Shown here: in pieces, positions 2,966 to 9,775 of the stretch | Position numbering within the stretch: the stretch's first letter is position 1 | Layout: the number at the start of each line of letters is the position of its first letter | Source: Ruditapes philippinarum | Lineage: Eukaryota | Direction: 5' to 3' | DNA: 64,000 bases | Assembly (NCBI RefSeq): GCF_026571515.1 | Contig: NW_026855453.1 | Span: forward strand, 1 to 64,000 | Position numbers and translations under genes: made by a program | The notes under the pieces: model-generated | What the model was told of the DNA's origin: nothing | The model's database searches: none | The model's input: only the letters and a program-made list of their open reading frames with translations

Positions 2966-5019
2966 TTTGTTGTTATATTCCCTTCTTTATGCCGTTCTAA
3001 TAAACCATTTAAATTATCCATGTTTAATAGGTCATACTTAATAAAATAAAAAATAAACGAAACTGCTATAATCATTTATCACGCATTACTTAGAAGGGCA
3101 CATTTTTGTCTGTACCAAAATAACTCGCATGAACATGTTAGAACAGTGGTGGGAACTGTGTGCCGTCACTGTACCACCTACGTCGTGTTTTTATTTTTGT
3201 GTATGTTCGTGTGTGTTTTTTGTTTCTTTTTTTGTTGTTGTTTTTTTGTTGTTGATTTTTAATGTGCATCGCAACGCAATATTTGCAGCAAAAAACACGC
3301 TCTCTGCTTCTGGTAATTCTGATTTACAACGATTTCTTTCTTGTTTTTATTAATATTATCCTGTCCCTTTTGAGCAAATCTACACTCATTTATAAACCAC
3401 TATCTCTAATCTGCATTTTTTATTAAGAAAAGAAAATTCTTAAAAATTCGCCTCTGCAAATATAAATATAAGACACTGCTCTATGAGCTGTTGTTTTATG
3501 AAAATACTTGACAGAAACAGCTACTATTCTAACTTTGTTTTGCACTAAAACATGTTTTGAAATTTTACAGTTTCTATATTTACATTTAATCATAAACTTC
3601 GATTGTCCGGAGGCAAGTGTGTACAAACAACTATGCGGAAAACGAAATAATAAATAAATAAAGGGAAAAATATTTTTCGTATAAATCAAACATGAAAGAA
3701 ATAAATAGTTTGTATCGCGGCTTCCCGACACCTCTATTTCATTGGTTCGGTAAAAAACTGTACCCTATCATGAATGGATACTTTTAATGGATAATAAGCG
3801 CATTGATTTCATTTTTGATTGCACGAAAGCAATATAACATTGCCATTAGCGATTTAAATACGAAAAAAAGATAATTAAGCATAGATATATCCAAGTTTTC
3901 AATAATCACAAACAAAAGTGAGTTTTACGAAACAAATAATGTTTTGTCTAATTTGTATAAACAGCATCAGTTTAATAAAGCTCTTAAGACACTCCCTATG
4001 TAGTTTGCTTTGTGTTTGCTCTCTTCCTTCCTGCACAGCGCATCATAACATACTTCACAAATAAATATTTAGCATTTTAGATTCTCAATAGATGCATTTT
4101 TAACACAAATCGCTCAGCAGTGAGCTTTTGTGATAAAAAATAAAAAAAAACATTTTTCTTTAATTACATGGATTTTGACCAAACAGGAACAACCCTTATG
4201 CAGCCGTCTTCAAAAGTTATCGATAAATATGTACACCAGGCATATACTGAATGTCTTATCATTTCTTGAATACATTTTATGTTTCTGCAAGTAAATTTAC
4301 AACTCGACTCGCACACAGAGCGACAATCTTAAAGTTAACTATGAACTTTAAATATAACACCCAGATGAAATTTTCTATACTTAATGATTCTAACCATAAT
4401 ATGGACTTGTGTTCCGTTGTGCGCACTATTTACTTGAAATACTTATTTCCTTTACTTTGCTACGTTTTGCTTTGCTTTGCTTTGCTATAGCATTAAACCA
4501 TGTAATTTGTGCAACGTGTAGTTGATAAAAATCTAACGCACGTAATTGAAAGTGCAAGTGTCTTTTGCGGATTCGGCCAATAAAACGATGAAGTTACTGG
4601 AGAGGTCATTACACCTTTCTACAGTATTAACCTTTCTACAGAGAACGATTGCTGGGTGCATCCATCTTTTACGTATCAACTTAAGGTAACGAATCTAATT
4701 TAAAAGTCTAAATCATTTCAAGCCTAAAATCATAAGAACCAGTCTAAAAAATTGTCATACGCATGCCAAGTTTCAAAATATGACTTTATTTAAACTTTAA
4801 AAAATAACATCGAGGTGAGCAAATCGGTAATAGTTGTTAAAAATCGGAAAATATCATTTGAACGGGTGTTGAACAATATAACAAATATTCTACGGCTACA
4901 AAAAAAAACAGCAACAAAAAACTCTCGCATGCTTCTTTTTCAAAAGAAAGCTTGTGTCATTACGCTTGAATTTCTTAAACACTATGTCTTAATAAAATTA
5001 TATTTATCACAAACCTCAA

Positions 5020-5296
5020 AAGCTGCACGCCTCCAGATGAGCTAAAATATTTCTAGAAATTCAATCTTTACATGTTATATGCGATTAATGACCGATTTTG
5101 CAGTATCAATCTCATTAATTATACTGCATTACTAACGCAGTAAGAGGCATTTATGTATATTTTGATGTCGTTTTGGTTAACGTGGATTGTCAGGGTGGTT
5201 TGCAAGTTGTACATTACTGTCTTTGTTCACTTCACAATATTTCACTTTTAAATACATTTTCAAAATTTGCATGAAAATTAGCATAAATCTGGAGGA
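5020..5296. mobile_element. Copy of the TTAA-flanked MITE family, opposite orientation
   Basis: Begins agctgcacgcctccagat and ends atctggagg. The internal ttactaacgcagtaag is the reverse complement of the segment at about 17866-17888. Confidence 0.65.
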
Positions 5297-6705
5297 TTTT
5301 ATCGAGAAAGATATTCAGAAGAAGGAAGTGGAATATAACTGAAATTTCAAGTATCGTTTTTGAACAGAGACGTCAATATTTTTAATTTTTGGCATACTTT
5401 TGAGATTCCGTTTTTCTCTATTCCATATCAGTTCTTGCCAATCCTAAAGTCAATAAGCTATAAATGACACTGATAAGGGGACTTCTAGAATATTTTTCTT
5501 TCCAAATAGCATATACATGTACTTAAACGTGGAAAATAAGTTTCGGCATTTTTTTTATAACCAAGCCTTTTCTAAAGTGAAAAAATTCTTAGCCGGAAAA
5601 TATTTGAAACGTCGCACAAGTGAGATAAGACGTTAGCTTGTCAACGATGGATTTTTGACTATCATTTCTCGTTCGTTTCTTAATTATTGTAAAGCTCTTT
5701 CAAGTATTTTGTAGAATTACCTTGTGATGATATAATACGAGATATCGTAAGATAGACAAGACCCCTAAACAAGTTGTTCCATTGAACGAAAGGAATCTCC
5801 ATACGTCAGAATTATTAAAGTAAACTTATCTTGGCAGTACAAATATGAGTTTTGTATCTTGAAACAACTGTTAATTATCGCCCTTTCTCTGATGATGCAA
5901 CTCAAATTTCACTAAAATGTCATCAGTAATGTGTTAGTTTAAGTAATCAGACTATCGTTGTTATTCTAAATATTCATACATATTCTCGGGTTTATTGAAA
6001 GCGTTAATTTTTATTCCGTTCGGCTTGCGAGCAAGTTATTTGTCTACGAAGAGCTTTACTTTCTTTGGTGTAATCGATGTTCAATTGTTTATCTTTGTCA
6101 TCGACATTCTCACATCACCGACCAATACTTTTACAAGAAAGATTTTGCCTTGGTAGGAGAGGTCTTATATCTTAACGTGCTTCTTTTTGGTGTTACCAAA
6201 ATCAAATATTTATTGTAATTAGCAAGTTTGAAATCTATTCAAATATGTATGGCCCTAACGCAGTGTAATCAACACAAACAATTTATGACAAGGCGTTGAG
6301 CAAAGTCTTTAGTTGATAACTCGTTTAGACACAACAACAGGATCAATAGGGACAAAATACAGAGACACAAATCGTTGAAAAAAAGTTTTTATTTCTGATT
6401 AGTTATAATTAAACATAAACGTTGAAGAAGAAAGAAATAGTTAGTAAAAGCTACAGCAAAATGAATCTCTTAATATAAAATACGAGTACATTTTCAATCG
6501 CATAACATATATGTTATAGACTTTTGTCATGTTAAATTGCAAGAAATCTATGTTTCATATCTTTATAAATGATTCGGCAAAGAATAGTAAAGTTCATTAC
6601 AGATATAGGTATATAATCACATTCAAAAAAGTAAGTCATTGAAAATATACGGTAATTTAAATTTGTTTTGAAAATAAACCTTTAGAAGCAAAAAAACATA
6701 TTGGT

Positions 6706-9624
6706 TTATTTTCTCCTTATCGGACATATTGGATTGAAACGGCCTGGAACACAATATATTTTGCACCCATACGCGTAATATGATCGGACGAGCCTTCCCG
6801 TGGTTCTGCAGTAGATTCTGACGTAACAAAGATAAGCGCATGGATATCTGTAGGGAACGCAGCGAACATATCTGTAATAGGACGGACATACATATCGTTT
6901 CTCCACACCACCGCTCTGTCTTTGTACCTCTACAATTGAAAGCACAAGTTTAAAGTTACCATAACACTCGATTCAAAATAAGTAATCATTTAAGACTTTT
7001 GTATGGCGCTGGTGAATATAAGTACCTTAAAAGTTCCTTATGTTTTTATTTATAAATTACATTAAATGGCTCGAAGAAAATATGTCTATATGAACGTTTA
7101 AATTGTTTGAAATAACAATGGAATACATAATATAAAAAATTTAGAAAGTGATTTAACAAAATATTACTTTTCATCCAATAGATTTTTGTTCCCCTTCACA
7201 TTCTTTCAACCTTTTCAGACGTAGGTATTATGTTGATGAATGTAGTTGCCTTAAAAGTGTCTGATGATTTTACTATTAGTTTACATAAAATGACTCGAAG
7301 AATATCTATATGATATATTTATTCGATCGAATTAACAATGTGATACATATAAACATAAGTGAATTTAACAATAATTACTTTTCATCCAATAGATTTTTGT
7401 TCCCCTGCACATTCTTTCAACCTTTTCAGAAATCAGATATTGCGGAACCTCGGTATCTGTCCTTACCCACTCTTGCTTCTCAGCCTCTCTTTCCTCGTTA
7501 TCCTCATTTTGGTGGATGTCAACCTGTGCATAAAACAACCACATGTGCTTTTTTTTTACCTTTTTTCAAATTACAAATTTTTCAGTTTTTACATTTTGTA
7601 TTTTAAAGAAACTATTTTATACTTCAACAAACCATTTAACAATTTTGTGTTAAAACGGCCGTTAGTTTAAGGATTTCTGTTTGTTTCTCTATATTTGAAT
7701 AAAGATTGACAAAGATGATTGTTTTTGCACATGAATTCGATTTCAAATATTTAATCAAAAATTTTTAATAATGTCCTGGGAATTCGATAACCAATGATTT
7801 TTGTCCAGGAAATATAAAGGAATCACGTTTAACAGCCAGTTTTTATGTATATAGATTAATATAGTAGTATACCTCTCCACTTGAATAATCGTTAGGGTCT
7901 CGACTTGGAGCTTCGGTCTCATTAATATGCTGTGCAATACATTCGCTTTGTGTATTGCTCTCTCTATCAACAAACCGTGTCACAACTATGCCCTGAAATA
8001 ATTACATAAACAACATTTTGTCCCTACTTGTATACGACGGTACAATATGATATTATAACAATGAATACATGATTTAAATCACATACATGTAACTGACCAT
8101 TTAATCAACAGCAAGTAAGTAAGTAGAGGATTGTTTATACCTACTCTCCAACATATCAGCTAAAATAATCATAAAGGACATTTTATATAACGTGTTTGAA
8201 GAGGAGGGTCATCTATAGATAAATTACATTCTGGTTTATATTCAGTTCATCTACATGGTCAACTTACATTTTTGTAATCATAGATGACCCCAGCCACATT
8301 AGGAATCCGCACGTCAACCTCTGTTTTGGTTACATTAGTTTCCTCTTCAATTACTTCCCCTTTGTCGGATTTGAATGTTTGCCGTACAGTCTATGTTATA
8401 TGGAATAAAATATGAATTTCAAAGTAATAATTTATGAACTCAGATCCTTTTTTGAAAATTAAAAAAAATGCAACAGAGAAATTATACTTATACAAAATTG
8501 AGAAGAATGGTTTTAATCAAATTCGATCAGGTGGTCTAGTACTAAATGTATTTCAGTAAGGATTACTGACAAATATGTCCAGAATATTATGACATTTCAA
8601 AATCACATAAAATAACAACCTTAAAACATTAACAGCAATTAGTAAACAATGGACTTTGCAATTAAATATGAAAAATAAAACAAAATAAAAAAGGGCCTAC
8701 CTTGAACGATTCTGTTGTTATTTCCGATCCAAAATAAACAGACACAAGGATAATAGTTGCAACAGCTGCCACGGCAACGACACCAGTTACCACTCCAACT
8801 ATTATTCTTTTATTTGAAAATCCCTTTGATGCTTCATTTTGAACCTTGAAACAATACATATGACATAATTTGATACAATTAAGTAAATATATTTGCGTCT
8901 TAATAATGCAATTAAGGTTATGTGTTGCCATTTCCAAGGAAACACAAAATGAAATATATACCCATATTCCTGTCTAAAATGTCATCGGACAACCATTGTA
9001 AGGTTAAATATTTATTCATTTCTTAGGTCTGGACCTTTTTTGCCATGTTCTGTATTTAAAGAAACTAGATTATTTCGCGAAAATTCAGAGCACTTATTTA
9101 ACGAGAAAAAAAAGAAACTGGTGTAGTGATATCTTTCCTTAACTTGGAACAACACATTTAATGTAACGTTTTTATTACAAGGCACACTACAAATAGTACT
9201 AATACATCCAGACGTTTTTAAGTCTAACATAGTCTGACATAATAACTAAACAGTTGTTATTATTAATAAGATTAAATTAAATGAAAAGAAAAATAACAAA
9301 CATATTGTCAATTCGTAAATTGTAAATGAACATATGGTCCATATGTTCATAATTTTCAGAATTGATTTGTATGTCCACTGGCGATGAGCTGAATTTTGCG
9401 ATCTTATTCATTACAAATTAATAAGTATCAATCCAGCACTTAAATTTATATTTGTGCCACATTTATTTTGCAACTCTCATGAAAATAAATGATGAATTTG
9501 CACAGCAAAATATATTGATAAATATATATAAAAAAAGTAACTTAAATACCTTTTCATGCGCATTCGTTCCAATCACCGTGCCAATATCAGTCTTTCCAGT
9601 TTCCATTCCTAAAGCTGGTTTCAT
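6706..9624 (-). CDS. BRICHOS-domain type II membrane precursor with a C-terminal Cys/Tyr/Arg-rich cationic peptide (putative antimicrobial peptide precursor), about 276 aa
   Basis: Exons complement(join(9550-9624, 8701-8844, 8268-8390, 7873-7992, 7379-7523, 6706-6929)). All introns are GT-AG with phases 0,0,0,0,1; 831 nt open. Layout: cytosolic N-tail, TM IIVGVVTGVVAVAAVATIILVSVYF, BRICHOS motifs VIYDYKNGIVVTR...C and LISEKVERMCRGTKIYWM, EKR site, then a 62-aa 8-Cys peptide. AATAAA on the minus strand at 6388-6393. Confidence 0.88.
7025..7430. repeat. About 200-bp tandem duplication covering the 3' end of BRICHOS exon 5 and the adjacent intron
   Basis: 7025-7219 resembles 7249-7430. The exon-derived part is near-identical. 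Confidence 0.8.
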
Positions 9625-9679
9625 CAGTAAACTATCAGAGAACAATATCTAACTTTGCTCGTTTGTTGATCACTGAGCT

Positions 9680-9775
9680 TATTGAAGGAGACTCTCGGAC
9701 TGTTGGCTTAAATACCTGCCCAAAGTCTGTCGGGTATGGCTCGGGGATTTTAAGTTTTAAACAATAGCCAATCAA
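9680..9775 (-). promoter_or_regulatory. Putative core promoter of the BRICHOS gene
   Basis: TATTTAA on the minus strand at 9714-9708, about 30 nt before an Inr-like TCAAT. CCAAT box (agccaatca) near 9766-9774. Confidence 0.4.

Follow-up and report, generated by a model that had tools for sequence, protein, structure and literature searches.

Proteins with a BRICHOS domain follow a general rule, according to which an anchor or signal sequence is followed by a chaperone domain and by a C-terminal, aggregation-prone polypeptide that is freed by proteolysis (PMC9714404). The layout is described as four-part, with a hydrophobic region, a linker, the BRICHOS domain and then a C-terminal region (PMC2751770, PMC9714404), and the hallmark of the domain is a strictly conserved Asp accompanied by two Cys residues (PMC2751770). 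Several BRICHOS-derived peptides of polychaetes have been proven antibacterial (PMC10745061, PMC9756803), and a review of 2022 gives BRICHOS-related antimicrobial peptides (BRICHOS-AMPs) in polychaetes only (PMC9756803). Here, we describe a BRICHOS gene of the Manila clam (Ruditapes philippinarum) from a stretch of 64,000 nucleotides (nt) (the window; RefSeq assembly GCF_026571515.1, contig NW_026855453.1, positions 1 to 64,000). Its six exons lie on the minus strand at 9624-6706 and encode a BRICHOS precursor with a 62-amino acid (aa), eight-cysteine tail in the last exon. The gene is intact and belongs to a small family of venerid clam genes with fast turnover. According to the explanation that we prefer, though tentatively, the tail would be released at a conserved Lys-Arg (KR) site and the basic copies of the family would serve in host defence.

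In the polychaete Heteromastus, the precursors (HfBRI) carry a dibasic site, their tails measure 18-91 aa and include two with 11 Cys, and a membrane anchor is found in five HfBRI precursors (PMC10745061). In addition, AmBRI-44a of Arenicola is cited in PMC11767717 as a BRICHOS-related peptide with four disulfides, and an initial annotation of the window, which had limited the known polychaete peptides to about 20-35 aa and one or two disulfides, is out of date on this point. The kind of system considered here is already known, including long, Cys-rich, membrane-anchored forms and a four-disulfide member. The clam gene shares with the polychaete precursors (arenicins, alvinellacin, capitellacin, nicomicins, HfBRI and AmBRI-44a) a hydrophobic N-terminal segment, a BRICHOS domain, a dibasic site and a C-terminal, mostly cationic and often beta-structured disulfide peptide. 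The difference is that the clam tail, which comes from a mollusc, has an eight-Cys framework of its own and a predicted three-stranded sheet instead of a hairpin. The known BRICHOS-related peptides are mutually unrelated in sequence (PMC10745061). As for the clam tail, the phmmer program detected no sequence relation beyond venerid clams, and hence none to the polychaete peptides.

Bivalve defensins, big defensins, mytilins and myticins resemble the clam tail in being small, cationic, disulfide-rich and encoded by multigene families. A hypervariable mature region beside a conserved pro-region is presumably also present in myticin C and related families. These bivalve defence peptides differ in having a signal peptide, no BRICHOS domain and a pro-piece that is usually C-terminal. 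Full-text literature searches that combined BRICHOS with mollusc, bivalve or mantle recovered no paper describing such a family, and no paper was found that names the LOC identifiers of its genes.

Reading of the strand at 6650-9760 and scripted testing of the borders showed that the six exons join into one open frame of 831 nt (276 codons and TAA). All five introns start with GT and end with AG, and all ten splice signals are canonical. The first five exons start in phase 0 and the last one in phase 1 (0,0,0,0,0,1). The features of the gene are as follows.

Exon 1, 9550-9624, minus strand: ATG at 9624-9622 and 25 putatively cytoplasmic residues; GT donor at 9549-9548.
Exon 2, 8701-8844, minus strand: putative signal-anchor, with a hydrophobic 25-mer at 8731-8805 and the basic KGFSNKR just before it.
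Exon 3, 8268-8390, minus strand: linker, NVT sequon, start of BRICHOS and the conserved Asp in YDY (8274-8282).
Exon 4, 7873-7992, minus strand: middle of BRICHOS, with the first conserved Cys in SEC (7939-7947) and the invariant NET sequon.
Exon 5, 7379-7523, minus strand: an acidic stretch and the C-terminal BRICHOS half, which includes the second conserved Cys, in RMC (7407-7415).
Exon 6, 6706-6929, minus strand, phase 1: linker of 11 residues with KR at its end, tail of 62 aa and TAA.
Lys-Arg codons, 6895-6900, minus strand: predicted prohormone-convertase cleavage site within GGVEKR.
Predicted mature peptide, 6709-6894, minus strand: 62 aa, 8 Cys with the spacing 8,6,3,5,14,3,8, net charge +12.
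AATAAA, 6705-6710, minus strand: overlaps the stop codon; possible polyadenylation signal.

The start of exon 1 agrees with the MKP.LGME start of the paralogue. The basic KGFSNKR implies, by the positive-inside reading, that the anchor would have type II topology. The pro-region, from the anchor to KR, is acidic, with an isoelectric point (pI) of 5.0 and 29 acidic versus 22 basic residues. The same six exons, with the same borders and phases, are present in an annotated paralogue of the clam genome on contig C8643 (protein P0009), which shows that the window model is not a chance chain of open reading frames. The window locus is almost certainly a real gene of the BRICHOS family.

The searches described below used single exons of the window or paralogue proteins, and the joined window protein was handled only in local scripts. 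According to the Pfam analysis, exon 5 alone matches the BRICHOS profile PF04089 (17.6 bits, E 0.0045, profile positions 52-91 of 91). Exons 1-4 and 6, searched singly, gave no credible Pfam match, the anchor in exon 2 having a weak, sub-threshold similarity to Mid2 (E 0.062). The paralogue P0009 matches PF04089 with 30.5 bits over profile positions 5-91, the gathering cut-off being 25 bits; the scores of other full-length paralogues are 33.6 bits (P0001), 29.9 bits (P0008), 29.2 bits (P0006) and 27.1 bits (P0004), and P0002 (24.9 bits) and P0005 (23.6 bits) lie just under the cut-off. In the pro-region, the window copy and P0009 have 138 of 145 aligned positions in common. The alignment of nine family sequences shows that Asp, both Cys and the NET sequon are invariant; the window has all the hallmark residues, in YDY, SEC and RMC, and its precursor shows the four-part layout. 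The feature search in the ESM Atlas indicated only BRICHOS clusters among the neighbours of P0009. A scan of the whole genome with PF04089 was blank, which is uninformative since the domain is split over three exons. The initial annotation had described a BRICHOS proprotein of a probable mollusc, with six phase-consistent exons giving an anchor, BRICHOS with both Cys, GGVEKR and a tail that follows an acidic pro-region and has its own exon, and this architecture was confirmed throughout, the last exon adding only the 11 residues before the tail.

With exons 4, 5 and 6 as queries, copies of the gene were found on four other stretches of the R. philippinarum genome, which comprises 15,874 contigs (1.41 Gb).

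C8643, 3757-6595: all six exons; the translation is XP_060606769 (P0009, LOC132759064).
C11591, 18000-27999, copy A: TGA in the tail and one Cys lost; the RefSeq protein P0001 (240 aa) ends there.
C11591, copy B: no recognisable tail in the annotated protein.
C11120, 132-3341: inverted, 82%-identical duplicate of window positions 4729-7815, comprising exon 5, exon 6 and 2 kb downstream.

The exon 6 copy on C11120 has several frame changes and has lost its cysteines, and this copy is a pseudogene fragment. The two proteins from C11591 are P0001 (LOC132721150) and P0008 (LOC132721145), and P0002, P0004, P0005 and P0006 are proteins of Mercenaria mercenaria. The family genes are labelled "uncharacterized protein" in RefSeq. 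Three of the Mercenaria proteins agree with the window copy in the KR site and in the spacing of the Cys residues. P0006 of Mercenaria and P0008 of Ruditapes contain the anchor and BRICHOS without the eight-Cys tail; they are isoforms or copies that end soon after BRICHOS.

The tail of the window copy has no Asp or Glu and contains 13 Tyr, 10 Arg, 8 Cys and 2 Lys; its mass is 7.59 kDa and its pI 9.6. Tyr, Val, Ile, Cys, Thr and Phe together account for approximately 55% of its residues. KR stands immediately N-terminal to the tail in seven of the seven Ruditapes and Mercenaria sequences compared, and the framework C-x8-C-x6-C-x-Y-x-C-x4-Y-C-x14-C-x3-C-x-P-G-x2-N-P-I-C is invariant in the five intact tails from the two genera. 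Outside the cysteines, the two intact Ruditapes copies are 48% identical, and comparisons between genera give 24-34%. The tails stop 1-5 residues past the last Cys, and the residues there are mostly basic. With its dibasic KR site and positively charged C-terminal peptide, the window precursor shows the layout by which BRICHOS-related antimicrobial peptides are described (PMC10745061). The net charges of the intact tails are +12 (window copy), +4 (C8643 copy), +2 (Mercenaria P0002), +11 (P0004) and +9 (P0005). Cationicity is a feature of the window copy and not a family trait. The composition reported in the initial annotation, including the net charge, was reproduced by script, and its notion of a cationic peptide family holds for the window copy and fails for the family. 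The residue directly after KR is Gln or Glu in most tails, as would be expected, we infer, for a new N-terminus that is able to cyclise.

The AlphaFold model of the tail, based on a seven-row alignment, predicts that mature residues 6-14, 20-29 and 35-44 form three long antiparallel strands, with a mean pLDDT (predicted local distance difference test) score of 78. The same topology was obtained for the tail of P0009 in a separate full-length AlphaFold run of otherwise poor quality (pLDDT 45.6). The Foldseek search of the tail model against the PDB found nothing at E <= 0.001 (best E 0.25), and an exhaustive VIA-align comparison with 48,161 chains reached at most Z 3.7, the noise level for a small sheet. 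According to both programs, the model matches neither defensin-type nor knottin-type nor other solved Cys-rich folds. No sequence match of the tail was found in Pfam, NCBIfam or the PDB, a profile search of the PDB with the family alignment gave one chance match only, and the tail alone, as a query in the ESM Atlas, returned no usable match. The initial annotation had likewise not recognised the Cys spacing from defensins, mytilins, myticins or macins. With exon 6 as the query, phmmer recovered only two venerid clusters and one spurious match from 1.84 billion representative proteins, the relatives in both genera keeping KR and the eight-Cys framework; the search of the protein collection for homologues of exon 6 recovered no short fragment.

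The tail evolves differently from the rest of the precursor. The protein identity of exon 4 to three paralogous exons is 90-95% and that of exon 5 to its paralogues 78-96%; exon 6, with 54-60% aa identity among paralogues, is the sole strongly diverged exon. At the nucleotide level, the window and C8643 copies are 87-93% identical in exons 1-5 (exon 2, 87.5%), 72-84% in introns and 72.6% in exon 6. With introns at this level and tails only 55% identical, the possibility that the C8643 gene is an allele or haplotig of the window copy was rejected. The Nei-Gojobori analysis of the same pair gave a non-synonymous rate (dN) of 0.043, a synonymous rate (dS) of 0.228 and a dN/dS ratio (omega) of 0.19 for the pro-region, and 0.352, 0.738 and 0.48, respectively, for the tail. 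Protein-level change is eight times faster in the tail than in the pro-region, and silent sites also change faster there. Positive selection was not demonstrable in the tail, its omega of 0.48 being below 1. Among the allelic forms of the C8643 protein (P0007, P0009-P0011 and P0013), amino acids vary at 5 of 62 tail sites versus 3 of 208 sites elsewhere (Fisher p 0.017), and this variation includes charge changes, with replacements of K by T, L by K and G by E.

Some further observations concern the organisation of the copies. Intron 5 of the window gene contains a tandem duplication of approximately 211-224 bp (6984-7219 versus 7208-7430), the downstream copy of which carries the following piece.

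Pseudo-exon piece in intron 5, 7169-7228, minus strand: copy of the 3' end of exon 5 with TGA in place of the BRICHOS Cys codon.

In copy A of C11591, three tandem copies of a related intron segment are present, and the distance between exon 5 and the tail exon is about 5 kb, compared with 0.2-0.45 kb in the intact copies. The intact window and C8643 copies are each located less than 10 kb from a contig start, in orientations that suit tandem neighbours if the contigs abut; a break of the assembly within a tandem array is possible. Convincing alternative cargo exons were sought near the window gene and none were found. At 4167-4328 on the minus strand, the same as that of the gene and 2.4 kb downstream of it, there are 54 stop-free codons with 7 Cys; this frame is probably noise, since such chance frames are common in this AT-rich DNA.

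Since the clam gene fits the general BRICHOS rule and the polychaete dibasic-site pattern, a sequence of membrane insertion, folding, cleavage and release can be proposed. The gene would encode a proprotein inserted into the membrane in type II orientation, with a short N-terminus in the cytoplasm, one anchor helix and, on the luminal side, an acidic BRICHOS domain that is N-glycosylated. In the endoplasmic reticulum, BRICHOS would prevent aggregation of the beta-prone tail during the formation of four disulfides. A protease of the prohormone-convertase type would then cut after the conserved Lys-Arg and free a three-stranded beta-sheet peptide of about 7.6 kDa. The release of the tail at KR is probable. 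In the case of the window copy (+12) and the two strongly basic Mercenaria copies, the product may be a secreted host-defence peptide acting on microbial membranes, and such a peptide would correspond, in a mollusc, to the BRICHOS-related peptides of polychaetes. By this analogy, the tail is a candidate antimicrobial peptide, a role that we regard as possible and somewhat short of probable.

Several results speak against this scheme. The charge of the tails is unconserved, from +2 to +12, and a charge-dependent function cannot be the common role of the family. The two long 11-Cys tails of Heteromastus are likewise not cationic and have no known function (PMC10745061). The tail model resembles no known antimicrobial peptide fold in the fold searches. 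The P4 position of the KR site is occupied by Val or Ile and lacks Arg, and the site is not a furin consensus. The contrast between pro-region and tail would be explained by gene conversion of the 5' exons or by an older 3' exon as well as by diversifying selection. Finally, the window protein is absent from a collection of 15 billion proteins that includes RefSeq, Logan and ENA proteins and in which the paralogues are present, and the window copy may be weakly expressed or silent.

As for expression of the family, the five allelic forms of the C8643 protein derive from Logan/ENA contigs of 967-1476 nt. These contigs are too short for a genomic copy of a 2.9-kb gene and were taken as spliced transcripts, which suggests that messenger RNA exists for the family. 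RefSeq annotated three paralogues on the same assembly and no protein at the window copy. A silent or dying duplicate in a birth-and-death family, with its open frame kept by recency or chance, would agree with this absence beside the five variants of the C8643 copy, with the frequency of wrecks in the family (C11591 copies A and B and the C11120 fragment) and with the tandem duplication that hit intron 5 of the window copy. However, the absence from assemblies may also reflect tissue, induction or presence/absence variation. The six exons are open, with canonical splice signals, and the omega of the pro-region is 0.19. In the window copy, the eight cysteines of the tail and the two of BRICHOS, the Asp, both sequons and KR are also preserved despite 45% aa divergence of its tail from the nearest paralogue; the chance of keeping eight of eight Cys at such divergence without constraint is roughly 1 in 100 by our own estimate. 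The decayed relatives have lost Cys or frame, while the window copy keeps every functional landmark. A silent or dying copy seems fairly unlikely, and we lean, with moderate confidence, towards the window copy being expressed.

Another explanation, which we find unlikely, is that the gene is the bivalve counterpart of chondromodulin-1 (ChM-I, CNMD) and tenomodulin (TNMD). Its eight-Cys, aromatic-rich domain would then be a secreted or surface-exposed signalling or matrix-modulating module and not an antibiotic, and the charge would be incidental or serve matrix binding. In the ESM Atlas search with P0009, the clusters of chondromodulin-1 and tenomodulin came first (0.92; 205 and 207 shared features), above those of SP-C and nematode BRICHOS proteins, but such a match can rest on the BRICHOS part alone, and the tail-only search gave no usable match. 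LECT1 and TNMD are described as vertebrate families (PMC2751770). The precursor of chondromodulin-1 is of type II and has BRICHOS and a basic site for cleavage, and the domain encoded by its last exon holds eight Cys, joined in four disulfides, and a Tyr/Trp-rich, disulfide-closed loop (PMC5390337, PMC3492907); the clam gene resembles both vertebrate proteins in its putative type II anchor, BRICHOS, basic site and last-exon eight-Cys domain. The tails of tenomodulin and chondromodulin model as a separate domain (PMC9714404), and so does the clam tail. The ChM-I cysteines named in the papers are Cys 68, 79, 83, 99, 103 and 109 (PMC5390337, PMC3492907). If its two further cysteines are, as we take them to be, at positions 69 and 72, five Cys stand before and three after the aromatic loop in both the clam tail and ChM-I, with C-x6-C-x3-C ... 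C-x3-C in common. The spacing nevertheless agrees only partly, being 8,6,3,5,14,3,8 in the clam and 0,2,6,3,15,3,5 in ChM-I. Furthermore, the clam tail lacks both the hydrophobic C-terminal tail (Trp111-Val120) for which the chondromodulin family is known and the glycosylated domain 1, its charge is strongly variable, and its predicted cleavage site is a KR right before the Cys domain and not RERR 120 residues from the end.

The least probable explanation, already raised as a possibility in the initial annotation, is a structural, cross-linkable protein, a Tyr/Cys-rich basic peptide from mantle or foot that would be built into periostracum, shell matrix or byssus through 3,4-dihydroxyphenylalanine (DOPA)/quinone or disulfide links, with BRICHOS only stopping early aggregation: the high Tyr content (21% in the window tail and 24% in that of P0002), 13% Cys and many basic residues presumably recall mussel foot and periostracal proteins, but Tyr is unconserved (4 to 14 residues across the intact tails, with only 4-5 in two Mercenaria tails), the fixed eight-Cys framework and ordered predicted fold suit a folded mini-protein better than a tanning substrate, and no paper was found that links BRICHOS to mollusc mantle or shell.

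BRICHOS-guided mining has been the most productive route to new beta-hairpin antibiotics and has so far concerned marine worms only; a conserved, uncharacterised BRICHOS cargo family in two farmed clams would extend it to molluscs and add a new disulfide framework to try against aquaculture pathogens such as Vibrio and Perkinsus. The natural charge variants from +2 to +12 on one scaffold offer a ready experiment on the contribution of charge to activity, and on the way in which BRICHOS deals with a client that is folded and has four disulfides instead of being a simple hairpin. In its fullest form, which we consider doubtful, the proposal is that the tails of venerid clams are the first BRICHOS-chaperoned host-defence peptides outside annelids, with a new four-disulfide, three-stranded beta-sheet fold, a membrane-anchored precursor, a birth-and-death family whose cargo exon is hypervariable and polymorphic next to a conserved chaperone, and possibly a distant kinship with chondromodulin and tenomodulin. 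If the tail is indeed related to the chondromodulin/tenomodulin domain, the clam genes would provide an invertebrate root for the vertebrate family, and antimicrobial and signalling BRICHOS cargoes would be tied to one ancestral module.

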